A stretch of DNA of 64,000 nucleotides from Entomortierella parvispora E1425. Taxonomy: Eukaryota; Fungi; Mortierellomycota. Under the pieces are notes generated by a model that was given only the letters and a program-made list of their open reading frames with translations, made no database searches and had not been told where the DNA came from. Within the stretch, counting starts at the first letter, position 1, and every line of letters begins with the position of its first letter. This document shows positions 2,408 to 24,760 of this stretch, piece by piece. The stretch covers positions 248,001 to 312,000 of the forward strand of contig BQFW01000005.1 of assembly GCA_020891255.1 (NCBI GenBank), in the 5' to 3' direction. The translations under genes were made by a program, and so were the position numbers.

Positions 2408-4146
2408 CGTTGTGGTTCCTGTTGTTGCGCCATGGTCGTCCGTTCAGCCTTCTCAATCTCGTCCGCGACCCAGAGCGCACAGCCAACAATATTTGTCCAC
2501 ATGAACAACAAATTAGCGAGGGGGATGAGTTCCAGCAACACTGCAATGCCTCCGAAACTAAAACAACATGCATAAAAAACAGCGCAGTGGCGCACCAGGG
2601 AGAGAGTTAGTCTTTTTCCATCATGGCCCACAACGCCATGGATAGTAGACAACAGGCGTAGTATAGGGAGAAGGGAGGATAGATGCTTACCCCACAAAGT
2701 CGGATCGTCGTTTCCAAGCTTCTGATTTGGATTGACTGACGGAATAGTTTCGGATCTCCACGTCGTAGTGGAACCGCATGCCAAAGGTTAGGATCCAGCC
2801 ATTGATGCCCGCGTAAATGACTTGGCCCAGAACAGGTACCAAGTTCAAAGGCAGGGTCAGGAGTAGCACAATAATCTACAATGACGCGTACATGGGATGG
2901 AGAAGCAAAGAAGGATGTCGCATGAGCAAAGAAGAAAAAAGAAAAAAAAGAAAAAAAAAGGAGGGAGGGTCCCAGACCGTTATCAGATCAAAAATTAAGC
3001 CGAGCCATCTCCAGGTCGTTTTTTCTCCCGCCTGCAGGAAAGGACGTAACGAAGAAAGAGCCATTTGGGAGGGGAGATGTGCCCTTTTCCATCGACTCAT
3101 CCTGCCCCCACCCTGCGCTCCATCTTAATCCTGTCGGGAGGTCGAAAATGGAGACTGAAACCCGCAGATAATAGGGTAGATCTCTCTTCTCTCGTCTATT
3201 CCCAAGTCCGGACCTGATGCATGTCAAACACGCTCAGATTTTTTTTTTTGTTTCCATCTTTGCCGACAGGGGTGGCGAATGCACTCCACAAATGGGACCC
3301 ACTGGGCACATGTCTCGAGCCCTCTTGTCGTTCGGAAATAGGTGCTCTCCCCGCCCTTTTTTACATGTCGTGCTCAAGTCCCCATGTCCTGTCTGACGTG
3401 AATGTCCCATGTTCAGTCCCAGTCCAAGGGCAGGTCCCAGCTAAAGTGGCCAGGCCCAGGCCCCAGTCCTCTGTCACTGTTCCTGCTCCTGTTTCCTGCT
3501 CAGTTCAATCTAGTTTTGTAGTGTACCTGGATAAAGACAATCAAGAGTCCGCCCTGGACACCGCGCATGCACTTGACCACGCCATTGCCCTTGTTTTGTT
3601 CCAGAACATGGCGAAGGCCTCGGAGCTTGAGGACTCTGTCAAACAGCCCATCCTGATAAATAGGCAAGATGATCAAGTAGAACAAGAGGATCATCAAGGC
3701 CAGTTCTAACAGCACAAAGATGACGCACACGAACCTAACGAGGAAGGATGATGGGGTGAGTTCTCTTTTGTTGTTTGCTCCTCGTTGTATTGGAATTCTT
3801 TGCATGACCCGAGAAAAAGTGGGACCAGCAGTTCAATATTTTGCTTGAATAAGTCAGAAGGGAGAGATTTTTTTTCCTTTTCTTTGTTCTCATGAATGAG
3901 GAATGAATGAGGCATGGGAATGCCAATGCAGTGGGGAAATGAGTTGTACCATGCGAGACCGGCTGGACAGTTGACGCGAATGAGGGCGTGTGCCTGAACT
4001 TTGAGCAGGTAGGCAAAGGCAAAGATAGTAGCGGCTATAGCCCAGAGGATGGTCATGATGATGGGGCAGAGGATACTGGTGATGAGTTGTGGGTGTCCTA
4101 TGAAGTACATGACGCCCTGGACGGGGTAGCTGGAGGGGATGATCAT
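2182..4146 (-). CDS. EI24-domain multi-pass membrane protein (yeast Rrt8/Lds-like), 4 exons
   Basis: Exons 4146-3950, 3734-3527, 2875-~2691 and 2557-2182 splice in frame with GT/AG. Motifs: SYPVQGVMYFIGHP, LPLNLVPVLGQVIYAGINGW, FGGIAVLLELIPLANLLFMWTNIVGCALW. Poly-Q C-terminal tail. Confidence 0.8.
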
Positions 4147-5220
4147 GGTAGTGTGTGTATGCGAGTATGTGTTGCCAGGTGAGTGAATACGGAAAGAAGG
4201 GAGGGAGTGAAGTAAACAGGGGTGATGATGTGAAAAGGAAGTCTGGATGGAGAAACAAAGAAGCAAGGGAAGCAAGTCCGTGTGCTCATGGCCTTGTCCG
4301 AGATAAGCATCGCGCACACAGAGCGTCCAATGCGCGCGATTGGCGGCGCACCTGTTTTTTCTGTGTGGTCTGTCTGGTATGTGTCTGTGTCTGCGTGCAT
4401 GTCTGTCTGTCTGTTTGTCTGTCTGTTTGTCTGTTTGTCTGTCTATCTTGTCTGCCTCTTGTCCGCTCTCAAAAAAAAAAAAAAAGCGCGCGTCGTGCAA
4501 TGGGTCACGAATTCTCGGGATTCCACTTTCAAGCGATTTTATTTTTTTATTGCATGCAGCGCGTTTTTTATCCGGCTCTTTGCATTAACGACTGCAGCTG
4601 TGCTGGTTTGTAAGATTTCATGCGGCCTCCACTTTACGCTCTTGAAGTGGATCCACTCCGGTGGATCGTTTCCTTTCGAGATATCGAGCGCTTGTTATGT
4701 AGGCATTTGGGGTCATGTCGGATTTGTAAGAGCTCATGTGACGTGTCGTGGGCAAGATCTCCGTCCGAGCTGACCTGCCTGTGCATGTAAGAGACTCGCG
4801 TGTGCGACGCGCCGCAGCAGGATGTTGCAGGGTTTCTCTTGACCTTCTTTCGTGTTCTTTTGGGTAAAGAAAGACCCTAGGCTACACCAACAACAACAAC
4901 AACAACAACAGCAACAACCACATTGCACGCCGCATCTTCGCTTTTAGAAAGAGCCCAACTGAAGCCAAGGGAAGGAATTGTAGGTGGACACCAACCATGT
5001 CAACTCCTCGGGATTGTAAAGATCGTTGTTGTACGGGTCTCTTTTTTTTTCTTTCTTTCTTTCCTGATTGCCTTGCTCACTCGGCTCTTTTTCTGTTTTC
5101 CTTTCACTCTTCTTTCCACTTTCTTTCCTCCTTCCCCCTTTTCATCTCTCTGCGCCTTTTCCATCCTCCTGCCATCTCCACTCTTCCACCCCTTCTCTGC
5201 GGTCGCCCATCACATCTTGC

Positions 5221-7609
5221 ATGGCGACCAGCCCATCCACGACGTTGCCAGACAACTCTGGGACTGATCACGACCTTACTTCGGTTGCATCCAGGATGTC
5301 CAGCTTGTCCCTCCAGGCCGTAGACCGACCACTGTCCACATATTCGTCTCCAGACACCACCATTTGGGATGATGACATGCCTTCTCCCCTACCGCCTATA
5401 TCTGTAGACAGAGACGTTCGTCTTCAGGCGGCATGACCTCCTCAAGACTTACCTCTAGAGTTCCATCCAGTCAACCAGACAGCAAAGAACGAGCCTCCAA
5501 GCGCCTCTACAGTGGCACGAACGGATGTAGGTTAGTGGAGACGCCTCAGCAGAAAGAGACTCACCCTGCTACCTCCTCCACCGGAATGATGAGCAACCTT
5601 GCCTTTGACTTCCAATCGACGATTCAGTTCAAGGAGACTCCTCTGCCAGCGAAGCTGCCAGTGTCTATGAACAGGGATGTACCATCATGGAGCAGACCCC
5701 CTGAATCGCAAGCGGATGCAGACGCCATCTATCGAGGTTCACCTCCCAGCTTTCAGCAGTCAACTCCCACTCAGCCAGCTGTGCAGCCAGGGAGGCCAAT
5801 CTCGGATACGCCACCATCCAAGTCTGTCAACAGGGAGATACCACAGGAGCCCAGGCCCCCAGAAGATCCGGCTGGAGCAGGGGCTAGTCTTCGAGTTGAT
5901 CGAGATACACTTCTCAACTTCAAGCAGTCAACTCCAGTCAAGAGCACGCAGCCAGCAGTCCATCAGCAGCAGCCTGAGAAACCAATTGGATTTGGATCTG
6001 TTCATCATGTTAATCGGGATACACCTCTTGATCTCCGTTCAGCCACCGAGAGACCCACTGTTGCGTCTACACCTCTAGTCCCACCGTTGCCACAAGCAAA
6101 TGTGGATAGAGTCAAGAAGACGCAGCAGAAAGAGTCTCTAGGTCATCCCATTCTGCGAAAGGATAATGATAACCAGGACGCTCCTCCGGGGGACCAGGAT
6201 CGCGACCTCCTCCTTGACTTTAAACCTGCGAACCAGGTCAGCGGCGATCAACCAACAGTGACGATGGGTCGCAGGCCTCCAAACGACCCGGAGGGGGCTG
6301 GGCCTATTCTTCGAGTCGATCGAGACACACTGTTCGACTTCCAGTCGACAAATGCCGCCAGGATTCCGCCAGCGCCTCCGGCTCCACCGATCTCCATCCA
6401 AGCGAAGCGGGAGGAGTGGGCTCCCCCACCACCGCCACCAAGCCCAATGAGGGTTGATCGGGACAGACCACTTCATCTACAATCAGCGAACGGGGCCCGG
6501 CACGGTTGTCAGTCTCCAGCGGTTCCACCGATCTCGGCTCAGGCAGAGAATACAGTAAGTTCCATCCACCCCCGCCGGCGTCGATGAAGGTCGATCGAAA
6601 TAAACCTCTAGAGTTCCGTTCAGCAAGTCAGGCGAGGGAGACTCAACCTCCAGTTCCTCCATTGACGAATGCGAATCCAGTTGAGACTCCAAAGCCAAAG
6701 CCCCCAGTGACGCCAATATCGGAGGCGGGAGCGGGAGAAACCAAGGAATCAGGAAGGGGTACTCCACCGTCAATGTATGACGATGGAGAAATGCCACCAG
6801 ACCTTTATTCATCTCAAAGATCTGAACCTCGGCCATTTGTATTTAGAGGCTATCCGTCCCCTACATTCGGCTCGGCCCCATCTCCGGCGCTGGTGGATCG
6901 GGATAGACCCCTTGACTTTCGCCCTGCTAGAGGCACTGGACCTCAGTCATCTGCATCCAGCGGTTTCTCTGCACCAACACAGCAGTCGGGAACACATGGC
7001 TCGGCCCCATCTTCGGCATTTGTCGATCGAGATAGGCCTCTCAACTTTCGTCCCTTTGGTCACCCCACCTCTCCAATCACTCCACTGACGCCGTCGATAA
7101 GTACCACTGCACATCCTTCTGCAAGACCAGTTACTCCAACCAGCCCTTCCAATGCTTGTACTCCTGTAGGAGTAGAACCTCAACCCAGCTATCACCTTGC
7201 TCATTATCAATCCCCCTATCAGCAACCGGTAGGACCGATACAAGGACAATATCCCCAGCATCATCGCCCCCCTGACGGACAAGGACACCCTACAACCGTC
7301 TATTATCCAGCTCCAGTTGCTCCTCCACCAGCAAGTTCAGGTCCCCAGCCTACCTATTATCCATTGCCGCCTGCCTCACAATGGCCCAGTCGGAATGTGT
7401 TTCCTCCTCCAGGGCCAAGTTTACACACTAGTCATCTATACCAACCTAACTCTTCGCCTTGGAACGTCCACCCGCCAGCGCTGGTGGTAGGAGGTGTGGC
7501 TCCTCAACGGTCTGAAGCACCGGTACCACCTCTTCCTCCCATTAGATCTGGAGTCATACCATCACCTTCTGCCTATGTGCCCACAACACAATACAAAGGC
7601 AGGTCTTGA
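5221..7609 (+). pseudogene. Pro-rich protein with about 12 (V)DRD(T/R)PL(D/E/N)F-type repeats, split over three ORFs; pseudogene or unusually spliced gene
   Basis: ORFs 5221-5436, 5433-6587 and 6506-7609 all carry the motif. In-frame TGA at 5434-5436, after which the same frame still reads QDLPLEFHPVNQ. Frame changes near 5530 and near 6545. Confidence 0.6.
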
Positions 7610-8530
7610 TATTTTCTTGCATGATGTTAATGGATTAGGAAATAAAAGGCAGGAGGGTATTATACGTGAGAGCGAAAGGTGAAGCATCCAAAAAAAAAAA
7701 ACATGCGGACCTGTCCAATTGATGGCCAATGGATGACGCGTGCTTTTCTTTTTCACGCAAAGCGCGCACAGACGCAGGATTTTTTTAGAACAACATTGGG
7801 TCGATTGCAGACAAGAATGCTCTCGGTAAGATGGCGTTCCTCACCTCAGATTCTAGTCATTTTGAGGGCTACTTTGCCTTTCCTTGGCAGAAGCCCCGCA
7901 GGGTGATCATGTTTGAGCGTCGAGTTACAAAGCAACCAAAGCTGTTGCGATCCATAGGTCTGCGCACACTGCTTGCTCAGCATTTGTATGCCAAGCACAA
8001 TTGGATGAGCCAATCGCCTTTTCTTTTTTTTTTTTTGGAGTAGAAGCAAAGACTATTGACTTTTTGACGGCGGATCATGGACCAAGGACCCCTGTTCCAG
8101 AAGCAGCATGCATAGGCAACAGAGCAGTTCTGTTTGCTTGTCGCTGATCGGCCTATAAAAACGCAGCCCATGCTCCATCTCGTTTTCGATTGGGGACAAA
8201 CAAAGGTGCATGAAAATGTTTTTTTTTTTTTTTTTTCTCGTAAAAACGGAAATTGGGCCAAGGTGGACGACCTGATCGGGTAGAAATATCTAACTGACAG
8301 GGCAAGTTCAAGGGGAGGGGGATGCTCCAGGTGGCGATGGAGGGACATTTGGCAAAGCCAATTGACCATAAAGATTTGTTGAGGGTCCATTTCCTCGCCT
8401 CTTTTTTTTGTTCTTGCAGTCAAGTCAGCACTACATTAGAGCACCAAAGCGCCCTTTTTTTTAAACTGCCCATCTTGTCCCTCTCGAACCCCAAGCGGCT
8501 GCATTCCCTTTTGCCTTTAGCATCCTCACC

Positions 8531-11500
8531 ATGTCCTGGTCGAATCCGCTCGACCTTGTCGAGCAGCAGCGGCAGTCAACAGCAGCCAATTCCTGGAGCG
8601 GCGACAGCAATGGCCCCTTTGAGTCGGCCATGGACACCACGATCCGAGCCAGTTCTGGATCGACAACAGACTCTTCTCCAGAGGAAGAGCTTACTGAGGG
8701 TGACACAGGGATGATCAGTGAGGTCATAATCGCCGATAGGCTTTGCAGCCCTGTCTGCAGCCCTGTCAGCATCCCTGCTCTTTCTCCTTCTTCTTCGCCT
8801 TTGTTACATCCACAGCAGGACCGGCATGCATCCCTGTCGGTGGGCGCAGATCAGGTCCGGATCTCGGCTGCACTGGGAGATGAACGGTCACTTGACTTGT
8901 CTAAATCTCAGCCAGGGCTGCAGACCAGGGCAACGGTGGCACCTGCCAATGCGATTCAGGTGGCACCATCGACAACGGCCTGTGCACTCACTCCTCCTGC
9001 ATCTGATTCTTCCATTGGTCCAAATGTCGACAAAAGACAGGCAGGTTCTAGTTCGACTCGTTGCAGGACCGCCGAGTTGCCGACGGTTGTTGAGGTGGTT
9101 GACCCAACCCTGCCTATGCAGAGACTTGCATCCACAGATGTCTCTGCAGCGTTCTCACCTTTGCCAACACCATTTCTTCAGAAAGCCCAAATGGCAAAGC
9201 TCATCAGCGACAGGTACAACAAGGGCAAGCACGTAACGTTCCAAAGTCGATCGCCATATCCAGATTTGATATCAAAGAACAACCACCGTCGAGGGCAAGA
9301 TAGCGGCGGAGGTGTTGGCTCTGCAGTCTTTGAATCAAGAGTGGATCCAACAAATGACATTGTCACATGTCAACCACGCTCTATGGAGGCGAAGGAGCCA
9401 TCTTCACCACCAGAGTCGGTTCCTTCTGCGGAATCGACGCCCCAGCTCACCCTGGTCCTTGAGACTCCAGACGAGTACGTGTACGGTCCTCCACAGAAAA
9501 AAATCCACTCCGAATCGGCAGTATGTAAGTGGGGCTGAGAGCTGTGCAACACGCACGATACGTTGAGTTCAGCAACATTGGAAAAGACGGGGCCTTTTCA
9601 TAACAAGCTTGAACTCTCTTCGTTCCTTTCAACAGCGTACAGATGGGAAGTCATGCAAATCGCCTATACACCAACAACTGATTCGTAAGGAAGAGAGTTT
9701 AGAGTGAACCAACGCCTCTTGCTAAATATCTGCCGTTGAAATGACCAATTGACGCCTGCTTGTTTGTCTACTATTATTTAGAGGAAGCACGCATGAGTCA
9801 GTCATGATCACTAAAGAAAGGCCTATCTACGAGGTAACTAGGACCGACCTTTGAAGCTTTGGCTTTCAATTACTCGAAAAAGATACAGCCATCAAGTATT
9901 TTGTTTGTTTACAAATGACTCTTTTTGGGTACATAGTGCCTTCTAGATATCGCAACAATCGAACCTGGGTGGTACTGGATTGTTCTACATTTGGAGCGTT
10001 CGCCATATCTAGGGAGGCAGATGATGAAGAACCTGACCATCAATGTGGAAGCGAATGGACGGGAAATAAATATGGTGAGATTTTGTGGGTACCTTTCCTC
10101 CTCGCCCAACTATTTTTGACCAACTTTCCTAACCTCTCTTACTCTCTACATCTTCTAGAGCAAAACCTGCAAAACAAAATTCGACGACTTCGATCTGGAC
10201 AACTTCTTTGGTAGGTGATCCCGCGTTGTTCCCGCCTAGTTTTCACTCACAAAAAAAAAAAAAAAATTGAAATGACTAAATCATTCCGTCATTCTTAGAT
10301 GGAGGCTGCTCCCGCTCGCGGTATGTACGACTTCATCGACAAATCGAGATCAATTCTCGAGACAGTTCTGGAAATGATTTGCAATTGAGCGTCGAGTCGG
10401 ATATCCAGACCGGTTATGCGGATGACCATCTCAAAGTGCACTCGATCCAACTGACAAGAGGTCTCCCCAACAACAGCGGTAAAGGACCTTTCACCGCCAG
10501 TATGATCAATACCAAATCCACCACTCTGCTAGTTTTTTGACCCGCCTGCTTTTTCATCACTAGATCTCATTGTCTATGGGGAAGGTAGACCGCACGATAT
10601 TATCCACATCCCCCAGAAGAAATCGAGCGACGGTGTTCCCAGGACTACCAGCATCCACAGCTTCAGTATCTCAAAATCACGAACCTACGCAGCAACCCTA
10701 TCCTTTGACGAGGATGACATCCATATTCAAGTCTGGGATCTTCAAAAGCCTCCCTCCCTCAATGATGGTCTTTTCTCGCCCCAAGAAAATAGCAATTATA
10801 GACCGCGGGAGCACAGCAAGCCGAAGGCTGAAACGATGTACAGTTTCAAGACAAGTCGTTCAGAGCTCAAGGATATCTGTTTTCAGATCTCCAATTCAGG
10901 GCCGCAAGTGACGCTCCACTCAGTTGAATCTGGCTCTACTGATCATGGAATACCATTCTGTTTGTTCCAGTATGCGGACAAGCGTCCTGCAGTTAACGGC
11001 GTTAGCGGTAACCTCGTCCCAGAAATGGCCCTTGCATCAGGGTTAAATAGCTTCTATGGGTACGGATGCTTTCATTCGCAGGACGAGGATCTCAACTCCA
11101 AGGAGCGATATATCACCTGCGAGGGAACTCGAGTCCGCCTTTACAACACAACATCTGAGAAAAGGAAATGGGACCTTTTGTACACATTACATTTGTGTCA
11201 TGAGCCCAACATAGATGCTGCCCTAAGGTTATATCTCAGTTTGCATGGCCAGTATTTTGCCTGGACAGGATCCAAGGAAGTGGTCACCATCTGGGACATC
11301 GAAACAGGGCGCTACATCTCAAATATTGCAACTTCCACCGAGGACAACGCCGACGTGTTTGTCAACTTTTCAAGGTTGGGAAAGAAAGTGGCCATCTCCA
11401 CCTCAGGGAAGATTACGGTCCATCAAACGCATTCGGGGATATTACTGGGAGAATATAGCAGCATGGGCCTCAACGAAGACAGCCTTTATGAAGTCGACTT

Positions 11501-14500
11501 TGACGAGGACTACTTTATGGCTATCGATCAGGCAGCCTCAGCAGAAGCAAGGGGGAAGCAAGAGTCCATTTCGAGCTGCAGGCGTATTGTGGATACGAGA
11601 TCAAACATGACAGTTCAAAGGACGTGCTGGGTCCACCGAGATTACCGATTGCAAGGAACATCTGGCAAACGAGTACCAATCTTTGCATGCGGTCAGGTAC
11701 GTAGCTGGAAATCCTTTTTTTTTTTTTTTTTTTTTTTTGCAATATGATGAGCTTGGAACTGACATGATTCGAGTTTCTTTCATTTTAGGGCTCGACACTC
11801 AGTCTCTTCACATTGGCTGACCCAATTGCCCCAACACCCGGATACAGAAATCATCCGAGCTGCTCTACCGAAAATGTCAGCGTCAATCGATATATACATA
11901 CTATGTCCCATGCGGTCCTGTCTGATGAAGAAGTCAGCTTTCGCATATCGAGCTCGCAAAGGAGTATACGTGGTGTCTGGTCCACGGTTTTAGAAATCTC
12001 GCGAACGGAGGACAGCTCAAAGTCAACGATTATTCCCTTGGGCCCTGCCATTTCTGCATACCATGGTATCTTTGTGGCAAAGACAGCACATTTAATCGTC
12101 GTTGTTGGGTGCTTTTTGCAGCGCTGGAGATTGTTCGCGACTGGCCCCGATGTCTGTGAATTGGACTTCGTCCGCAAGATCCAAGATGATAGCGAACATC
12201 CAAAGGAAGTCTGCTTTCGAGATATTGTCAGCGCTACTTTTTGCAGCCAGTGTCAAGAGGTTAGTCTTCATCTAGCCTCTCCGCAGTGGTTCAGGCGTCA
12301 CAGGCGTATTGAGGACGATAGCAAGAACAAGGCCAAGCAGAGACACCAACATGGACATCAACAAGAGACTGATACCATCAAAGTGCCACCCGAACATGAT
12401 GCAGCTTTTCAGCCCTCAGAGAACTGTGAGATTCAAGGAGTGGTTGGAGCGGTGACTATGTACACTGAAGGAGATGTGGTCATGAAGAAGTATGTCATTC
12501 AGTACCTACAGTCCTTGATCCGTCAATCGCAGAAGAACCACATATCTTCCATCGTCTGCTTGTGCAGGTCTTGGACACCCGAGCGCAGAGTGTCCATCGA
12601 GAGTATCCTGAGCAATCTGCTCTCGTTAAAGCACATCGCTTGGGTCCCCGACACGCTTGCGTCAAAGAAAAACGACCCGCTCTCCATCCTCATGGAGATC
12701 ACAAAGCGTCAGCCCAATGCCATTGGAGCTTCCCGAATTCTTCTCGACTATTGCGCGCACCACGCGATCAGCTCTCGCAACTTGTCGTTTCTTTTTCCTT
12801 TGTTCTTGAGCATCCATGAGCTCATGAATCTGTTTCCAGAGGATGCCTCCGAGTACCTGTCGAGGGTCGCCTTCATCCCTGTTCAACAACGGTCATTTAT
12901 CATTGACAACCATTGCGTGATCCCGCCACCAAAGATGTTCCATATTCCGTTCTTGAAAGAGAAGCAAGTGATCTTGCACGCTGAGATCAAGGATCCCATC
13001 TTGCAATTGGTGGTCACTCCTCCCGGAGAGAGAGATGCTGCCAGTGACACTTTCACAAGACCCGTGTTCATGACCTCATTTGACGCGTTGTGGACGAAGC
13101 TGGACGACAAGGAAGATCTGCAATCGGCCAGGTCGGGCCAGTCTCTCAAAGCGTCAAGGATACCGACAGTCGATTCGCCTGGGACAGATGTACTAATAGC
13201 AAGAACCAATTATGAGGATTATTGGGCCAAGAAAGAAAGGAGGAAGCGAGAGGGGTCGAATTGGATCAAGACGGCATTCTACATGATTGGATACAAGTGT
13301 CAGTTCCGCAGTCGGACGTATGTGAAAACCCACAAGTTCAAGGCCCTTGAATACTTTGACAATCCAGCCATTGCTGCTTTAGTCGCGTACAAATGGTATG
13401 GACACCCTCTCTTTTGTAATATTGAACATGTCGGTCCAACCCCGTGTTTTTTTAACAGGTTTTCCAATGAAAAATAGGAATACGATTGGATATTCATACT
13501 GGTTCTTTCGCTTCATGAGCCAATGTGTCTTTTACGCGTTGGTGTACTTTGCGGCGCTCTTCCAGGTCTATGATCGGGAGAACCCCAGTCAACCCATTGG
13601 CCATTTCATTGCCATCTTGGTTGTAGGCGCGGGCTTTCTCTGGCTTGAGCTCTTGCAGATGATCAGGAACCCGGTCCGATACAGGAAGTCTCGATACAAC
13701 TTGCTGGATTTGGTGGCATACGGGTTGCCAATGATTGCCAGCATTGATCAGATCATTGTCCATCAATCGGACGATGTTCAAGGGAATACCCGTATTCTCA
13801 GTTTTTCTCTTATTGTCATTTTCTTTCATATGGTAACAGCAGATCCATGATATCGAATAGCTACGTAACCTTTTTGCAGCTTCTACAAGGCAAGCTAACA
13901 TATCTCGTCGTCTCATCACATTAGCTGTTTGAGGCACGTGTCAATGAAGGCATCTGCAAGTACGTGACCATTATCCAAGAGGCGATTGTTGAGATCAAGG
14001 TCTTTCTAGTAATATTTGCGGCGGGGCTGCTGGGATTTGCAGTCGCGATTCTTCATCTCATGCATGGAAGATACCCGATGGGCAATTACAATCCGAGCGT
14101 GGACGATGTGGGGACCAATTTCCCATATAATTTCCTCGGCGCCGTCTCCGCAACATATTTCTTTATGGTACGACGGAAAACGGGAGGGAAGAGGTTGACT
14201 CTTTTCCCTTCATCGCGTAATAACAATCTACTCTTTTTTTCTCTCAAAATTAGGGAGGGATTTACGACTCTGTAAGCGATAACTTTGCAGGGGATGACTG
14301 GGCATTCCACCTGATGATGGCCCTCTGTTTCTTTTTCACGGTCATCCTCATGCTCAATGTGCTTATTGGTGAGCAGTGAACAAACTATTTTTTTCCGTCT
14401 GTTTTCGGTCCTATTCCGGATGGAAATGCTTTGTGTTTTATTTCTGAGACTAACTCATCCATTCCACTCTTCATTTGCAGCCTTGATCAACGTGGCATTC

Positions 14501-15022
14501 GCCAAGAGCGATGACGACTGGCGTCTTGTCTGGATCCAATCTCGGTTGCAGTACATTGAAGCGGCCGAGAACATGTCTTACTACCTGCCTGGTGTCCGGG
14601 ATGCTCATGACAAGTACTTTCCAGAGGTGATTTATTTCACAGCGACATGGAAAGAGGTCAAGGACTACAGACTGAAATATGAAAAGAAGAGAAAGGAAGG
14701 CGCGGCCTTGGCTGAGATGACAAAGCAGCTCTATCTGAACGAACAGAACGCGCAGGTGCAGGTCACTAATGGTGTTATAGATGCGGCGACGGCTGAAGAC
14801 ACAGGGGAACCCTTTGAGTCCTTGGGCGCAAGCGGCCGCTCGAGGTCCCCGGTGATAGAAGAGAACAAGAAGAAAGGGGACGAGAGAACGATGGTGGAAG
14901 ACGTGTCGATAAACAGCATGTTGGCTCAGATGGAGGCCTTGAAGAAGATGATGAAGGAAACCCACGATATAAACCATGCTCTGGCAAAAATCTTGTCCAT
15001 AGACTTTGACTCAACATCCTAG
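8531..15022 (+). CDS. TRP-like 6-TM cation channel with Ser/Pro-rich N-terminus, WD40-like region and C-terminal coiled coil (paralogue 1)
   Basis: Multi-exon and in frame: 8531-9524, small exons (SYRWEVMQ; CLLDIATIEPGWYWIVLHL; SKTCKTKFDDFDL), WD-like AWTGSKEVVTIWDIETG, FDNPAIAALVAYKW, S1-S4, pore ATYFFMGGIYD, S6 VILMLNVLIALINVAF and TRP-box-like WRLVWIQSRL. The true start is uncertain because an acceptor-like tttag sits at 8516-8520. Confidence 0.8.
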
Positions 15023-16682: not shown

Positions 16683-17441
16683 GGGGATGTGCTTTTGGGT
16701 GGACTGTGCGAAAAGGAGAGCGGAAAAAAAGGAGTGAGAAGAGAAGAAAGAAAGAAAGAAAGAATGAGGTCATGGATGCATTCCATTGAATGGTGACAAG
16801 AACAAAGAAAAAAAAAGACAGGAGACAGACAGGAGACACGCGGATAACGTGATCTGTGGGCCAATGGCATCGATGCAAGTTGGTGGCGTGTGTTCAATTG
16901 CAAGTGTCCTTTTTCGCTCTTCTCTTCTTTACGTTCCTTTTCTCTTGCTTGTCCTACTGTACAGTAGTCTACATTACATACATGCACTTTTGAGGGTCGC
17001 AATGGTCCGTTGTTGCTGCAGGGCTGAAGACTCGATCCCCTTTGGTCCTTCGGTCAAGTCAGCAAGCACCGCCCTGCGCACATAAGGCTGGTCTGGACAC
17101 GGTTCTTTTTTAGTGCAGGCTCTTGTCCCTTTCCCCGAGGAGATTATTGTTATTTGTTTATGTGCAATGGATGGATGGCTCTCTCCATCTTCAAGTGTGG
17201 TCCCCTGTTTTCTTTCTTTTTTCCCTTTCCCTTTGGTGTATCCACGCCGCTCCTTTCTTTGTTTTGGAGCCTTTCTTCATCTTTCTTTCTTTCTCTCTCG
17301 TTTTCCTTTTTCCTTTTCCCCTTCTTCCTTCAACTCCTCCTCTCGGCTCCCCTCCCTTCCTCCTTCCCTTCCTCCTTCCCTGTCTCCCTCGACTACAGCC
17401 AAGGATCGATAGTCACTCCATCACCCACCTCTTTCTCTGCA

Positions 17442-20400
17442 ATGTCCTCAACGGACCCTCCTGAAGAGCACAAACGCAAATGGTCCCCCTTGTCCGTCTT
17501 TGGGAAGGGTGGAAATCCTCCGCCACAGCAGGCTTCTGAAGGGCCTGCGGCCATGGCCGTTAGTTGGGACCAGATGCTCCCCGCCCAAACCCAACCAGCG
17601 CCAGCGTCATACTCTATGTTTGTCGATCGGAATCAGCCTCTTCCCCCAAAGACCTACAGTCTTGCCGACTGCGGAGGGCAAGCTCCCATGTACCCCAGTC
17701 GAGATGAACGTTTGCAGTACGTCCAGGCAACCATGCCCGATGACAACGCACGGCCAGCATCGGAGCTTCGTACTGGTTACACTGGAGACCCTGGTGCATA
17801 TCCTCCGACAACTTTCTATCCTCCTACTCTGCCTACCAACAGGGAGGACCTACTGGAATCGCAAGCCCCCATGTTCCCAAGTCGAGATGAACGGTTACAA
17901 CCTATTATTGTCCTTCCGAATCTTCAATCTGAAAACACTGGCAACCCTAGTGCATATCCTCCAACAACACAATCTTTCCCCGCGCTGAAGGTCGAGTATG
18001 AATATTTGAAATCAGACATGTTTATCGATCGCGATAGGCCGTTGGAACTCACTGTCAAGCAAGTTGATAATCTGGGCATCAGCAGCAGCACCGTTGATGG
18101 AGATCAGGGACCCATTTCCAGCACGCCCAGCAAGGATGCTGATAACAGGATCTTGGAGACCAAGGATGCGGGCGCCAATGCAGAGATCGCGCCTAAAGTG
18201 GACCCTCCCGACATGGATCCGGAAACAGCTGCCGCCGTGGCGGCCATCAGGGCGATGCAGGCGATGCCGGATCAGAGCCTAAACCCCTTTGCTCACCACA
18301 CCCTAATGACCGTGCACCGGGACCATGTCTTGCCCCTGCCGTCAAAGACAAAGGAACAGGGCGAAGACCAGGAGGTGCCTCTTCTGGTGTCCGCCTCAGG
18401 ACCTGTCACGCCCATCAAACCAGCCTCCACATCCGTCCCCAATCCCCCGCTTTCCTCTTCGTCCAGCAAGCTGTCGAGTGTCGGCGAAAACAATAGGTCG
18501 AGGTTGCATGTCGACAGGGATACACCTTTGGTGACTTCTGTTCATCCCGAAATGTCGGCGATGAGGGTGGACAGGGATACACCTCTACCTCGTCCGACCC
18601 AGCCTATCATCACGCCTCCGCAATCATATCCAGGACCTATGGCGGTCAATCGGGACACGCCTTTGCCCTCGAGGACTTCGCAATCACAGCAGGGAGCCAT
18701 GAGGATAGACAGGGACACACCTCTACCTCGTCCGACTCAGCCTATCGTCACGCCACCACAATCTCATTCAGGACCAATGGCGGTCAATCGGGATACGCCT
18801 TTGCCCTCGATGCCTCCGCAATCACAGCAAGGAGTTATGAGGGTGGACAGGGATACACTTTTGCCGCGGCCACCTATAACTCCTAGCGAGTCGACCTCTG
18901 GACAAATGCATGTAGAACGGGACACGCTTTTGCCTGGAGGCATGTCGCCAATGCATGTTGATCGAGACACGCTTTTGCCTATAGGCATGTCACCAATGCA
19001 TGTGGATCGAGACACGACTCTACCTGTTACAGAGACCCCTGCAGTTACAACAGGCTGGACTCCTTATCCAGCCAGATTCGGTTTTCCTAATTTCCCATAC
19101 GTTGCAGGTGGCGACAAGATCGATAAAGCCGGCCCTATTGACACTCCAGCGGAGGGTCAGGACGTTCCTCAGGAAGAAGCAGGCAACAATAGCAATTCTG
19201 GCGGTGCTAATACTGCCTTCACGGGCTACAACCCAATGATGTACCCAGCCCATTTGATGAACAATCTTCAGCACCATCCGCCATATATGAGACCCATTAT
19301 CGAACCAGATCCGACCAACACTGTACAGCCCATGATACCCCCTCCATTGGTTCTCCAAACTCCACAAAAGAACGCCCTTGGAGCTCCCGAGAAGATAGAT
19401 GGAAAGACTGCAGATGGTAAGCCATGTTCTAGTGCCCAGTTGAACCGGGAACAGAATCTATCGAAAGAAAAAGTGAAAAAGCTTTCCCTGACCCATTCTC
19501 CTAAATTTCACAACCATAGCATACCGTTGGAAAGTGCAGCAATACACTCAGTCGGCAACCATGTAAGCATGCCGTTGTACCTTTGAATGCAGTTTTCCCC
19601 CAGACGATCTATCTTTTTTTCTAACAAAAAATCAAATCCCCTTCTAGGTACGCATGGCAAACCTTGGCGCTTTACAGAGGAAAGAGTCACTACGAGGTAA
19701 GGGGCTGTTCCCGTCTGCCTACAAGTAAAGTGGAAGGATAAAAGGGAGAGGATCTGCTCTAACCGTTAATCTTGGATAGTGTACCTTGGATATCTCTGCT
19801 GTTGAAGGCGGGTGGTACTGGATTGTGTTTCACATGGAGCTCTCCCAGTTCTTACGGAGACAAATGATGGACTCTCTTGTCATCGACGTCAAACAACTGG
19901 ATTGGGATGGCAAGGAGATATACATGGTAAGTGGCGACTTCAGCTATTTTGAACAATTTCTTATATTTTTCAGCATTTTCCACTGACCAATATTTTCGTC
20001 CCTCAATCCCTTTCAAGAGCAAAACATGCAAGACCGAGCTCACTGACTTGGACTTCAACAATATGTTTGGTGAGTTTGCTTTTTGCGATGAGCAGTTAAA
20101 GTAAGCAAAAATGAAGGGTTATGAATCGCAGCAGCTAAAGTTCAGTTTTCAATTGTAGCTTCAAGATTGGGAGTTCCCATACGGGTGCGACTTCACAGAC
20201 AGATCGAGCTGCATCAGGGAAAGGATCTACAGGTGACAATCGATTCTAGTATCCAGTCTGCTGTCGGGGACTACCTCAAAGTGCTCCACATCGACATCGT
20301 CAGGGGAGAAGCCGACAACAGTGATGTTGTCGCCTATGGCGAAGGAAGACCACAGGAGGTGATTCACATTCCTCAACATCATACTCACGGCAGCTCCCTC

Positions 20401-23400
20401 CGGACCACCAACGTTCATTTCTGCAGCCTCTCAGAGTCGCGGAACCATGCAGTCACCCTATCCTTTGCGAACGACAGGGCATATCTTCATGTTTGGGACT
20501 TGTCGTCGTCAGGGCCTGATGGACCGTCTACCATTATTCCAGAGAATCCCCGCTCACCTACGGATCACAGAGTGCCGTTTGCTCAAACCTCATTCGACGC
20601 CAGAGCGGCTAATCATGAAGAAATCAAGGATATTTGTCTCGGGATTTCAAGCACGGGAATGCAGGTGGCCATACATTCGATTGAGCCCGACAATGGTCAA
20701 GGCATCCCGTTCAAGCTATTCCAGTACGCATCCAAAGTCCCTGCGGACCATGACATGTCCACGCCTTGGAGCCTGGTCAACGTCGACACACTTGGAGTGG
20801 GATTGAAGGATTTCTTTGGCTATGGATGTTTCCACACACTGAGCGGAGAGGAGAGTGCCAAAGAAAAGTATGTCACCTGCGAAGGCACTCAAGTCCGCGT
20901 GTACAGCACAATAGCGCACGGAGGCCGATGGGAGTTGCACTTTACACTCCCGCTATGTCTTGAGCAAAACTTGGATGCTGCCCTGAGATTGTATGCCAGT
21001 ATCTATGGACGCTACTTTGCCTGGACTGGATCCAAGGATGTGGTCTCTATCTGGGATATCGATACGGGACGTCATGTATCGTATATTGCTACGCTGACCG
21101 AGGATGATGCAGAGGTGTGTGCCAACTTTTCGAGGTCGAGCAAGAAGGTGGCCATTTCTGTCTCGGGCAAGATCCGGATCCACCAGACACATTCAGGCGT
21201 ATTGCTCGGAGAATATACCCAGGGATTGGACGAGGACTGTTTCTATGAGGTCGATTTTGATGAGGATTATTTCATGACGATCGATCAGACAGCTTCCACC
21301 GCAGCAAAGGAAAGGCAAGAATCTCTCACGAGTTGTCGCCGGATCGTTGACACGCGCTCCGACATGACCATTCAGAGGACGTATTGGATTCACCGAGATT
21401 ATCGACTTCAAGGAATAACTGGAACAAAACAGCCTCTCTTCGGTTACGGACAGGTATGCCTTGATGTGTAAATCTCCACAAATTGTCATAAAAAAAGGTA
21501 GTTTTACTAATATGGACAAATCCTGGTTTTTAGGGCTCAGTATTCAATCTGTTCCTATTGCCAGATCCTATCGCGCCTGCCCCCAGTTACAGTGATCATC
21601 CTAGCTGTGATCTGCGCGGAATTGTTGTGGACAGGTACGTAGGTGTCGTGTCCCTAGGTTTCCTCTCGCATGCAGGAGACAGTTTCCAAGTCTCGAGCTC
21701 CCAACGCGCCATCCGCGGTATTTGGTCCACTGTCCTAGAGATCAGTCGATCGACAGATTTCTCCAAATCTGTGATTCTCCCTCTTGGTCCAGCCATGTCC
21801 ACCTATCATGGCGTCTTTGTGGCCGAAACGTCGCATCTGGTCCTCGTGGTCGGATGCTTTTTGCAGCGGTGGAAACTATTGGCGACTGGACCCGAGATCT
21901 GTGCGTTGGAGCTGATCTGGAAAATTCAGGACGATTCCAAGCATCTGAAGGATATCTGTATCCGAGAGATCATGAGCGCAGGAATTTGCAGACAGGGCCA
22001 GGAAGTCATTCTTCAGCTGGCGCCCCCTCAGTGGTTCAGACGCTACAGACGCATCGAGGAGGAGGACGAGGAAGAAGAGGATGAGAAGAAGTCAAGGCAG
22101 CCAAGGCAGCCCAGACAGCTAATACCCGAGATTGCCACCGTGCCCCTTTCACAACATGACACGGTTGCTCTCTCCTTGGAAGATCGAGAGATTCAAGGAG
22201 TCGTTGGAGCAGTGACTTTGTACTCTGAAGGAGATGTGGTCCTGAAGCGCTATGTCATTGAGTACCTAAAGTCTTTGGTTCGCCTTTCTCAGGAGCACAC
22301 CTTTTCTTGCGTGGTTTCCTTGGCCAGGGTGTGGACACCCGAGCGCAGATCTTCAGTCGAGGGAATCTTGAGCGAGCTCCTTTCTTCAAAGCGTGTCACC
22401 TGGGTTCCCGACACCTTTGCAACAAAGGAGAACGATCCTCTATCGATCCTCATGGGGATTGCAAAGCGTCAGCCCAGTGCCATTGGTGCCTCGCGCATCA
22501 TTCTCGACTATTGTGTGGAGCATGCGGTCAATTATCGCAACCTGTCGTTCCTCTCGCCCTTGTTCCTGAGTCTTCATTCGCTCATGAACTTGTTCCCGGA
22601 GGAGGCTTCTGAATACCTTTCCAAGATTGCCTTCATTCCAGCTCAACAACGGTCGTTTATTATCGACAACCATCAAGTCGCTCGACCACCGCGAATGTTC
22701 AGGATACCGTTCTGGAAGACGAGCTCAGTTCCACTGTACAAAGTGGAGGATCCCATCTTGCAGTTGGTCGTCACCCCTCCCAAGGAGAAGGATGCTGCCA
22801 ATGACACGTTCACACGGCCCGTCTTTATGACCTCGTTTGACGCTTTGTTTACTTATATGGACAATGACACGGGATCGCGATCAGACGTTGTGGATTCGGA
22901 TGCACCGTCCAACATCTTGAGAGCGGCCACGGTGTATTCTCCCGTGGGGAATGGACCCAATACGGTGGTGCTGGAGGATGACAATTCTTGGATAGAGAAG
23001 GATAGCTTGGGCAGGAAGCGGACCAATTGGTTCAAGATTTGGCTGCATATGGTGCGCTACAAGAGCAAGTTCCGTTCAAAGATCTTTGTCAAGAGTCATG
23101 ACTTTAATCTCGAGTTTTTTGACAATCCAGCCATCGCAGCTTTGGTTGCATACAAATGGTAAGGCGGAAATTATTGACGTTTTCCTTTTGCGTGTCCTAC
23201 CCGTGGAACTAACACCGTGTTGAAAAAAAAAAAAAAAAAAAATAGGAACACGATCGGATACTCGTACTGGTTCTTCCGCTTTATGAGTCAATGTGTCTTT
23301 TATTTCTTTGTCTACTTTGCAGCCCTGTTCCAAGTCTATGATCGTGGCAACCCGAATCCAACGATTTGGCATTTTATTGTCATTTTAATCCTTGGCGCCG

Positions 23401-24760
23401 GCTTTCTCTGGTTGGAGCTCTTGCAGGCAATCCGAAACTGGCACCGCTACAGAAAATCGAGTTATAACATGCTGGACTTGGTGGCGTATGGGTTACCGAT
23501 GATTGCGAGTATCGACCAGATTGTGATTCATCAGATGGATATGGTGCATGGCAACACGCGTATCCTCAGTTTCTCGGTCATTATTGTTTTCTTGCACATG
23601 GTAAGTCTTGTTAATATCGTTTTGCCTTTGGGACTGCAGTTGTCTGTGCAAAGAAGGTGAGGTTTCTCACCAGAGGAATGTGTTTATTTTTCAATGACTC
23701 TATAGCTCTTTGAAGCCCGGGTCAATGAAGGCATCTGCAAGTACGTGACAATTATCCAAGAGGCGATTCTTGAGATCAAGGTCTTTTTGGTGATCTTTGC
23801 TGCGGGTCTGTTTGGGTTTGCGGTGGCGATCCTTCACCTGTTGCATGGAGGGTACCCGATGGGCGATTATGTCGACAGCGGACCCAATGTCGACAATAAC
23901 ACATTCCCGATGAATTTCGCGGGAGCTCTCTCTGCGACGTATTTCTTTATGGTAAGAGAATGAAGGCGAAGAAAAAGAAGAGCGGCGGATCAAATTCTCT
24001 TGGAGCGGGAAGGGTGCTTTCAGCGGACTAACGTAAAACGATGGCCTTTTTGTCCTATAGGGAGGAATATACGATCCTATCAGCGCCAACTTTGACGGTG
24101 AAGACTGGGCATTCCATATCATGATGGCCTTGTTCTTCTTTTTCACGGTCATCCTCATGCTGAACGTGCTCATCGGTAAGAGTCCATTTCCAGACCCTTA
24201 TTTTTTGTGTCCAGAGACGAGACCGCTCCTGCTCACCCTTTTCGTTTTTTTTTTTTTTTTTTTTTTTTTTTTGGTTGTCTTCAGCATTGATCAACGTAGC
24301 CTTTATCAAGGGTGGAGATGGATGGCGTCTCGTCTGGATCGAATCTAGATTGCAGTACATTGAATCGGCCGAAAACATGTCCTATCACCTACCTGGATTC
24401 CGGGATGCCCATGATGAGTACTTTCCCAAGGTGGTTTATTTCACAGCGACGTGGAAAGAGGTCAAGGATTACAAACAGAAATACGAAGAGGAGAAGCAGG
24501 AGGGTGCGGCAGCCGCAGAAGCCACCAAGCAGTTGAATGAACGGGTGGAGGCGTGCGATGCCGTGGCTCATGGTCATGGTCATAGTCATGCCGCCGCGGC
24601 TCCAGAGACGCCAGGCGGAGGTGCTGTCGGCAACGGAGGGGCCTCGGAGGCGACGCTGGCGGGTATTTTGGCGCAATTGGAGGCGTTGAAGCTCATCATC
24701 CTGGAAACACAAAAGGCCAACAATGCTGGAGGTGCTGTTGCAAACACCCCAAGCGCTTGA
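17442..24760 (+). CDS. TRP-like 6-TM cation channel with N-terminal VDRDTPL repeat array, WD40-like region and coiled coil (paralogue 2)
   Basis: ATG 17442 (MSSTDPPEE), about 12 motif repeats, then exons AYRWKVQQ, YAWQTLALY, CTLDISAVEGGWYWIVFHM, SKTCKTELTDLDF, 20167-21471, 21558-23162 and TM exons collinear with paralogue 1. WRLVWIESRL TRP-box-like motif. Confidence 0.85.
18561..19020 (+). repeat. Coding tandem repeats: 138-bp units (starts 18561, 18699, 18837) then 45-bp units (starts 18906, 18951, 18996)
   Basis: Read directly. The 46-aa unit is MRVDRDTPLPRPTQPIITPPQSYPGPMAVNRDTPLPS... and the 15-aa unit is MHV(E/D)RDTLLPxGMSP. Confidence 0.9.

Follow-up and report, generated by a model that had tools for sequence, protein, structure and literature searches.

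A lineage-restricted array of a nine-residue motif in the predicted disordered tail of a TRPW-like fungal channel

In the genome of Entomortierella parvispora, the first exon of a predicted ion channel gene repeats one short peptide about a dozen times. What is this peptide, does it belong to the channel, has it been described elsewhere and what could it do there? We addressed these questions in a 64,000-nucleotide stretch of DNA (the window), starting from a sequence-only reading that had listed about 12 copies of a seven-residue core, usually preceded by M-x, in a disordered region that splices in frame to a TRP-like channel.

The motif array and the channel that carries it

All 12 listed copies of [VI][DNEH]R[DN]x[PLTV]L were found in one frame of the open reading frame at 17154/17442..19586(+). 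Their V/I positions lie at 17622, 18024, 18312, 18510, 18567 and 18645 (copies 1–6) and at 18705, 18783, 18843, 18912, 18957 and 19002 (copies 7–12). Two extra degenerate copies, P-M-[YF]-P-S-R-D-E-R-L at 17694 and 17877, put the array total at 12–14. Methionine precedes the core at −2 in 11 of the 12 copies, as had been claimed, with leucine in the remaining one; the seven-residue core is present in 12 strict copies, and the conserved unit is longer, at nine residues, and takes in the Met at −2. Shuffling the residues of the exon gave a mean of 0.0034 chance matches and a maximum of 1 in 20,000 shuffles, against 12 observed. When all six frames of the window were scanned, the motif was confined to this array and to 5895-7022(+), where it occurs in six copies. 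The features of the array and of its gene are as follows; comparisons are with a soil-metagenome orthologue (P0001), a Gryganskiella homologue (KAG0050305.1, P0003) and a further homologue, P0154.

17442..19416, + strand: exon 1, encoding an N-terminal cap (MSS[TA]DP..W-S-x-L) and a predicted disordered Pro/Ser/Thr-rich tail with 12 + 2 motif copies
17616..17642, + strand: motif copy 1, M-F-V-D-R-N-Q-P-L, also retained in P0001, P0003 and P0154
17694..17714, + strand: degenerate copy, P-S-R-D-E-R-L with M-Y before it; aligns with M-Y-x-x-R-[ND]-[EQ]-P-L of the orthologues
17877-17897, + strand: second degenerate copy
18018..18044, + strand: motif copy 2, M-F-I-D-R-D-R-P-L followed by E-L; this extended type also occurs in the paralogous array
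18306..18332, + strand: motif copy 3, M-T-V-H-R-D-H-V-L; identical in P0001, within a generally conserved block
18504..19022, + strand: dense part of the array, copies 4–12, spaced by 15–26 residues
19417..19519, + strand: intron 1, 103 nt, GT..AG; its phase matches exon 2, and paralogue 1 has an equivalent intron (9525-9635)
19520..19562, + strand: exon 2, peptide Y-R-W-K-V-Q-Q-Y-T-Q-S-A-T
19648-19696, 19780-19926 and 20018-20069, + strand: exons 3–5
20159-21453 and 21534-23158, + strand: exons 6–7, predicted beta-sandwich, WD40 propellers and family-specific helical domain (from AlphaFold and Foldseek on homologue P0154)
23246-23600, 23706-23951, 24061-24175 and 24285-24760, + strand: exons 8–11, predicted six-helix TRP-like pore domain and C-terminal tail

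Exon 1 encodes 15.5% Pro, 8.2% Ser, 8.1% Thr and 5.5% Gln, and its AlphaFold model has a mean pLDDT of 39, with one short helix and otherwise no secondary structure. Residues 1-171 of P0154 likewise fall below a pLDDT of 35. These models agree with the earlier description and place the motif array in an intrinsically disordered region.

That the repeat exon is joined in frame to the channel, as the sequence-only reading proposed, is supported by comparative gene modelling. A phase-consistent GT–AG model comprises 11 exons and ~2125 amino acids and is collinear with the complete Gryganskiella homologue; P0003 and P0154, both themselves predicted gene models, have the same layout. The donor that closes exon 1 is GTAAGC, in phase 1. 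Conserved counterparts of exon 2 occur in paralogue 1 (9636-9685), in the read-through of P0001 and in P0003 and P0154. Exon 2 contains no in-frame ATG and is closely preceded by a stop, which requires its junction to exon 1. We placed the channel start at the conserved MSS[TA]DP because the Gryganskiella sequence upstream of it contains in-frame stops and no ATG; on the same grounds we rejected a start at the in-frame ATG further upstream (17160), which would add a hydrophobic extension. As Gryganskiella adds no upstream extension or signal peptide before MSS[TA]DP, the tail would be cytosolic.

The identity of the channel itself was approached through its homologues. In the AlphaFold model of P0154 (residues 1-1200), beta-propellers are predicted at a pLDDT of 80–95, and the top Foldseek matches are double-propeller WD40 proteins and WDR5, with the COP1 propeller also among the matches; Pfam matches to WD40 propellers were weak. 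A profile built from nine C-termini of the family matched only TRP chains in the PDB (TRPM2-like at 2.8e-6, then TRPV3 and TRPC4), and Pfam Ion_trans was detected in homologues P0152 (34.7 bits) and P0154, which bears out the description of the carrier as TRP-like. On these models the carrier combines a beta-sandwich, a double WD40 propeller and a TRP-like pore domain in a TRPW-like architecture.

Novelty, conservation and turnover of the motif

The motif array is previously undescribed, in line with the initial statement that it was not a named repeat: Pfam gave no family at E <= 0.1 for the 714-residue open reading frame, the ESM Atlas gave a best score of 0.53 with generic Pro-rich clusters only, and none of six motif strings was found in the literature.

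Across 46 pooled instances, drawn from three organisms and five genes, the consensus is M-x-V-[DN]-R-[DN]-x-P-L. Position −2 is Met in 36 of 46 instances (Leu in 5, Ala in 3). With the other positions held fixed, the tripeptide (V/I)(D/N)R is matched by V/I in 34/41, D/N in 34/41 and R in 38/40, and the residues beyond it by D/N in 38/39, P in 34/40 and L in 38/41. The x between them is free (T, Q, R, K, H and others), being Thr in 13/38 with the other positions fixed and Gln in nearly all Gryganskiella copies. Within the motif, four codons (CGG, CGC, AGG and CGA) specify Arg and six specify Val/Ile; this diversity of synonymous codons points to selection at the amino-acid level.

Motif columns were more often identical than linker columns in P0001 (80% versus 56%, Fisher p = 1e-5), Gryganskiella P0003 (47% versus 27%, p = 5e-4) and P0154 (64% versus 29%, p = 2e-3), with motif-column identity somewhat inflated because repeats tend to be aligned with each other. 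The tail is otherwise poorly conserved, at ~30% identity to Gryganskiella. Among the 150 family representatives listed, the only motif carriers were P0001 and P0003, with P0154 found separately; word-based protein searches with the tail found no carriers beyond these three, and a metagenome scan with the N-terminal alignment found only L002, from the same organism as P0001. The motif is kept in P0001, P0003 and P0154, and by these comparisons it appears restricted to the Mortierellaceae, where it spans at least two genera and a metagenome relative.

Within the window, three further features belong to the motif repeats.

18561..18858, + strand: recent tandem duplication, 138-nt unit x2.2, 86% matches, two motif copies per unit
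18905..19016, + strand: recent tandem duplication, 45-nt unit x2.5, 89% matches, one motif copy per unit
5433..7609, + strand: paralogous array of V-D-R-D-x-P-L-[DNE]-F-[RK], six strict and several degenerate copies

Copies 5–9 lie inside the 138-nt repeat and copies 10–12 inside the 45-nt repeat, and the recency of the duplication has kept the linkers in these blocks alike as well. A constant core with varying linkers, as had been claimed, holds across species, where motif columns exceed linker columns, but not within the recent duplications. At the Gryganskiella locus L003 a 57-nt spacing occurs four times, so that the expansions, built on 138-nt and 45-nt units in one case and a 57-nt spacing in the other, appear to be independent. 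In the alignment, motif copies can be seen to turn over at a roughly constant number. Conservation within the recently duplicated part of the array is uninformative.

The array at 5433-7609 spans two overlapping open reading frames in different frames, upstream of a paralogous channel (8531-15022) that itself has no array, and may represent a stand-alone array gene just upstream of that channel. Gryganskiella encodes a stand-alone Pro/Gln-rich array protein with ~9 copies of R-D-x-P-L (L004:~3085-5025), ~5 kb upstream of P0003 and with a minus-strand gene between; a protein search with it returned only an unrelated Gln-rich protein. Judged from these loci, the motif is not exclusive to channels.

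Candidate functions

We consider the array to be a lineage-restricted multivalent short linear motif that serves as a multi-copy docking site for a partner protein, a reading to which we give a probability of about 0.5. Binding itself, and the identity of any partner, are inferred. The tail, predicted to be cytosolic, carries 5–14 repeats of [small]-M-x-V-[D/N]-R-[D/N]-x-P-L; each would be a low-affinity site for the same peptide-binding domain of the partner, anchored through the invariant Arg and the Pro-Leu. With ~20–56 sites on a channel tetramer, avidity would hold the partner. The candidates for it are a cortical, endocytic or cytoskeletal scaffold, through which channel position, clustering or membrane residence time might be affected. 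Birth and death of tandem units would maintain copy number, and the stand-alone Pro/Gln-rich RDxPL protein would compete for the same partner or bridge to it.

Familiar ligand classes were compared with the motif and rejected. Register was wrong or key residues were missing for the PxxP SH3 classes, WW, EVH1, MYND PxLxP and ANK PxLPxL, for tankyrase RxxPDG, D-box RxxL, DxxLL and the Cdc4 degron, and for 14-3-3, WDR5 Win/VDV and COP1 VP; a PY-NLS fits at R-x2-P-L, but the motif is acidic and its carrier a membrane channel. A point against the docking reading is the narrow clade of the motif, since a ligand of a general adaptor should be more widespread, although single copies escape homology search.

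The partner might instead lie within the channel, with the motif binding its own WD40 propeller or beta-sandwich in cis, between subunits or in trans, for autoregulation or clustering. WD40 propellers commonly bind short Arg-centred peptides, and the WDR5 and COP1 propellers are among the Foldseek matches. Moreover, the motif is fused to the channel in gene 2 of the window, P0003 and P0154, and elsewhere lies beside one, directly before the array-less channel at 8531 and ~5 kb upstream of P0003; by Rosetta-stone logic such fused or adjacent pairs tend to interact. The Gryganskiella linkage is loose, however, given the intervening minus-strand gene, and the frames at 5433-7609 could be a separate gene or an upstream exon. 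The earlier suggestion of docking to the channel's own propeller also lost ground when a single-chain AlphaFold2 model of P0154:1-1200, built with 40 aligned sequences, left the motifs unplaced and undocked at a pLDDT of ~28 (below 35 throughout the motifs), a weak negative. We regard such self-binding as unlikely, and, if anything, slightly more so in its fuller form, in which fused tails act in cis and neighbouring stand-alone proteins in trans on the WD40 propeller while copy number tunes clustering or gating. If true, this fuller form would be a regulatory principle undescribed for any TRP channel.

It is improbable that the array is a functionless, slippage-prone repeat in a tolerant disordered tail, its apparent conservation a product of recent duplication. 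The 138-nt and 45-nt duplications, at 86–89% identity, do cover 8 of the 12 copies, and the rest of the tail has diverged as described; yet at least two genera retain the motif, as does a metagenome relative with diverged linkers, its internal codons are synonymous and diverse, its expansions are independent with different unit lengths, and the same core recurs in an unrelated stand-alone protein. Quite improbable, too, is a variant STAM/Hse1-Gads SH3 ligand that links the channel to ESCRT-0 for endosomal sorting. The ligand of the STAM/Hbp and Gads/Grb2-C SH3 domains is given as PX(V/I)(D/N)RXXKP (Kato et al. 2000, in the form cited in PMC2172215 and PMC10453029) and shares with the array the (V/I)(D/N)R core with its key Arg, a nine-residue footprint with defined positions −2, 0, 1, 2, 5 and 6, and a disordered setting. 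The array motif nevertheless lacks RxxK: the place of Lys at R+3 is taken by Pro (34/40, with no Lys in any instance) and that of Pro at R+4 by Leu (38/41), −2 is Met where the SH3 ligand has Pro, and the sole copy with a nearby Lys (V-D-R-N-K-P-L at 6590) is out of register. This resemblance was compared at the consensus level only, and no description of the SH3 ligand as a 12-copy array is known. Modification or cleavage of the repeats, by Thr-Pro phosphorylation or by a metacaspase or other Arg-specific protease cutting after Arg, strikes us as very improbable. Most E. parvispora copies contain R-D-T-P and the Arg is near-invariant (38/40); in orthologues, however, the x position has Gln, Arg, His or Lys in place of Thr, so phosphorylation cannot be the conserved function, which weakens the Thr-Pro array proposed earlier. 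A protease site accounts for Met(−2), Val(0) and Pro-Leu(+5, +6) no better than docking does, and metacaspase cleavage is pure speculation.

Significance and comparison with known systems

The locus adds a fungal TRPW-like channel with a conserved, countable peptide array, encoded either within the channel gene or next to it. Because the clade is narrow and the function a matter of inference only, its value is that of a lead and not of a result. As a lead, the array offers a concrete handle for a partner search and for testing motif valency against channel placement and activity. For the study of short linear motifs, it provides a clean case in which the birth and death of copies can be seen in a young, clade-specific motif.

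TRPW proteins, first described in 2026 as ancient sensory receptors, are WD40-propeller relatives of TRP channels from choanoflagellates and other eukaryotes (bioRxiv 10.64898/2026.06.15.732144, 10.64898/2026.06.15.732245 / PMC13663828). Like the carrier, they are described with one or more N-terminal WD40 propellers followed by a type-I-TRP-like six-helix pore domain, a likeness of architecture and not a phylogenetic placement. The fungal channel differs in having two propellers together with a beta-sandwich and a family-specific helical domain. The carrier family is fungal, and the available portions of the TRPW descriptions include neither fungal members nor an N-terminal motif array.

At the level of the motif, the acidic dileucine signal [DE]xxxL[LI] comes close in places: two copy types, V-D-R-D-T-L-L and V-E-R-D-T-L-L, are exact instances of D/E-x-x-x-L-L. 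The first-Leu position is nevertheless Pro in 34/40 and Leu in only 4/40, and the array conserves Met −2, Val 0 and Arg 2, none of which the dileucine signal needs.

At the level of organization, multivalent arrays in disordered tails include the 12 DLL/DLF clathrin-binding repeats of AP180, the DPF/NPF arrays of Eps15/epsin, the TQT arrays for LC8 and the GW repeats of GW182. The channel array resembles these in that a short core is conserved while linkers and spacing vary, in its disorder and changing copy number, and in the avidity binding presumed for it; it differs from them in its unrelated motif sequence and in being carried by an ion channel.

The motif array and its gene

Using the pattern [VILM][DNEH]R[DN]x[PLTV]L, we found 12 matches in the ORF 17154..19586(+), whose start is likely the ATG at 17442; the sequence-only reading had counted about 12 copies and implied exactly these positions, and its preceding Met stands at -2 in 11 of the 12. 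Shuffling the residues of the exon gave a mean of 0.0034 matches versus the 12 observed, and across six frames of the 64-kb window the pattern occurred only in this ORF and at 5895-7022(+) in the adjoining paralogous locus.

Features of the array-bearing channel gene
17442-17492, +: 17-residue N-terminal cap, MSS[TA]DPxE..W-S-x-L
17694 and 17877, +: degenerate copies, M-[YF]-P-S-R-D-E-R-L
18219-18260, +: helix predicted by AlphaFold (A-A-A-V-A-A-I-R-A-M-Q-A-M region; exon-1 residues 260-273)
18561-18858: tandem duplication, 138-nt unit x2.2 (Tandem Repeats Finder)
18905-19016: tandem duplication, 45-nt unit x2.5 (Tandem Repeats Finder)
19520-19562, +: exon 2 (Y-R-W-K-V...), matching 9636-9685 of paralogue 1, the second channel locus
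19648-19696, +: exon 3, matching 9782-9833 of paralogue 1
19780-19926, +: exon 4 (donor 19927), matching 9937-10077 of paralogue 1

The small exons 3' of the array ORF were found by comparing the two paralogous window loci. An in-frame ATG is missing from exon 2, and its reading frame is closed by a stop 30 nt upstream, so that a preceding coding exon is required; the GTAAGC donor that the array ORF carries at 19417 has just the phase needed (intron 103 nt). Completed with the complete Gryganskiella paralogue P0154 as guide, an 11-exon model of ~2125 aa has only GT-AG introns, lacks internal stops and is collinear with P0154 residues 1 to 1582, which supports, by comparative gene modelling, the proposed in-frame splicing of array to channel. 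The tail is predicted to be disordered, as had been expected: AlphaFold gave exon 1 a mean pLDDT of 39 and one helix. This helix, just upstream of the V-H-R-D-H-V-L copy, is conserved in the soil-metagenome homologue P0001 and partly in P0003 of Gryganskiella.

Conservation and distribution of the motif

From 46 instances in five genes, we derived the consensus [small]-M-x-V-[DN]-R-[DN]-x-P-L. The Arg codons vary among CGG, CGC, AGG and CGA, and the remaining positions also vary synonymously.

Residue counts by motif position, taken with all other positions fixed
0: V/I, 34/41
2: R, 38/40
3: D/N, 38/39
4 (x): free (T 13, Q 10, R 7...)
5: P, 34/40
6: L, 38/41

Part of the window array is young. 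Linkers are likewise conserved within the 138-nt and 45-nt blocks, so the claim of a constant core with variable linkers cannot stand on the window gene alone; it fails inside the duplicated blocks and holds in comparison with three homologues.

Motif versus linker identity (Fisher test); motif-column identity is flattered, as repeats tend to align with one another
P0001: 80% versus 56%, p 1e-5
P0003: 47% versus 27%, p 5e-4
P0154: 64% versus 29%, p 2e-3

In alignment with orthologues (A2), some copies that are intact in one species have decayed in the other, and the overall number remains near 12-14. Gryganskiella L003 shows a 57-nt spacing four times, versus 138-nt and 45-nt units in the window, and the expansions are independent.

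A profile of the family-specific domain matched 308 proteins, the named ones all from Mortierellaceae (Gryganskiella, Dissophora, Mortierella, Entomortierella). Conservation in orthologues, which the earlier reading had made a test, was found: among 150 listed representatives, only P0001 (a soil-metagenome ORF, 45% identity across the whole tail) and P0003 (KAG0050305.1, Gryganskiella cystojenkinii) carry the motif, and in P0154 (complete at 1589 aa, with Pfam Ion_trans) four copies are clear and a fifth is degenerate. The cap is conserved in all four motif-bearing tails, each followed by a Y-R-W-[KRE] exon (seen in P0001 via in-frame intron read-through). In Gryganskiella the start was placed at the cap because the sequence upstream has in-frame stops and no ATG; with this start, neither an extension nor a signal peptide precedes the cap, and the tail should therefore lie in the cytosol, as do the N-termini of other TRP channels.

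In Mortierellaceae the channel family has expanded, and its members carry swapped N-termini (window 8531-15022 and 17442-24760; 308 matches). Dissophora ornata KAI8604126.1 (P0152), a related channel (~34% identity), has a different repeat, P-[YH]-[RK]-P-L-[ED], five times in residues 40-210; it shares with the studied motif only a basic-Pro-Leu-acidic flavour and may represent either an array of separate origin or a diverged one. Judged from the matching order and lengths of called genes, the window's gene order (channel paralogue, minus-strand gene, start of motif-bearing channel) is apparently kept in a soil-metagenome relative (contigs L005 and L001).

Arrays beside channels and the role of the motif

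Channels are not the only carriers of the motif.

Array loci outside the channel gene
L004 (Gryganskiella cystojenkinii JAAAIG010000258.1) ~3085-5025, +: gene for a stand-alone Pro/Gln/Tyr-rich protein
Window 5433-7609, +: array with a similar Pro/Gln/Tyr-rich end

The L004 gene precedes the P0003 channel by ~5 kb, and a minus-strand gene separates the two. The L004 product contains R-D-x-P-L about nine times, in most cases with Gln next, amid polyproline stretches, and its similarity to the window array is limited to the motif itself. Between the window array and the paralogous channel downstream of it are 0.9 kb; the channel's own N-terminal ORF begins at 8531 and is free of the motif. The window array may be a gene in its own right, an upstream exon (weak GT donor 7603 and AG acceptor 8519-8520, phase-compatible with ORF 8531-; intron 918 nt) or a decaying relic or pseudogene (frameshift at a C5 run, ~6567-6571, and in-frame TGA 5434-5436); its locus, 5221-7609(+), is split over frames (ORFs 5433-6587 and 6506-7609, with a frame change between).

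That arrays are either fused to a channel or adjacent to one suggests a joint action of the two. Multivalent docking to a putative partner is the likeliest role, and we give it a probability of about one half. The main rival, that the array binds the channel's own propellers, is kept alive by that arrangement despite a negative AlphaFold result, and we consider it unlikely. In P0154:1-1200, run with 40 aligned family members, confident domains (beta-sandwich, two propellers, helical domain) lie past residue 172 (pTM 0.72, pLDDT >80 over most blocks), while residues 1-171, with all motif copies, have pLDDT ~28 and are undocked, so the suggested docking to the propellers was not predicted. Thr-Pro phosphorylation, also suggested earlier, is ruled out as the conserved function, since the Thr at the x position is not maintained.

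Comparison with known systems

What this TRPW-like fungal channel carries is a real, conserved array of a short linear motif that has no name, a solid lead in a narrow clade. As the sequence-only reading had supposed, it is not a named repeat: we found no Pfam family, Atlas cluster or literature match to the motif strings. An acidic dileucine signal matches only the few L-L variants. On sequence, the closest named motif is the STAM/Gads SH3 ligand, PX(V/I)(D/N)RXXKP (PMC2172215, PMC10453029), which shares (V/I)(D/N)R and footprint but is defined by RxxK, which the array motif lacks.

The TRP-like nature of the carrier was supported: in the PDB, the pore region matched TRP channels alone (TRPM2-like at 2.8e-6 with the family profile, then TRPV3 and TRPC4). 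Foldseek matched the P0154 model to double-propeller WD40 proteins and WDR5. Because of its WD40 propellers and TRP-matching pore region, the carrier is predicted to be TRPW-like: beta-sandwich, double WD40 propeller, helical domain and TRP-like pore correspond to the architecture described in 2026 for choanoflagellates, in passages that do not mention fungal members (bioRxiv 10.64898/2026.06.15.732144 and 10.64898/2026.06.15.732245 / PMC13663828).
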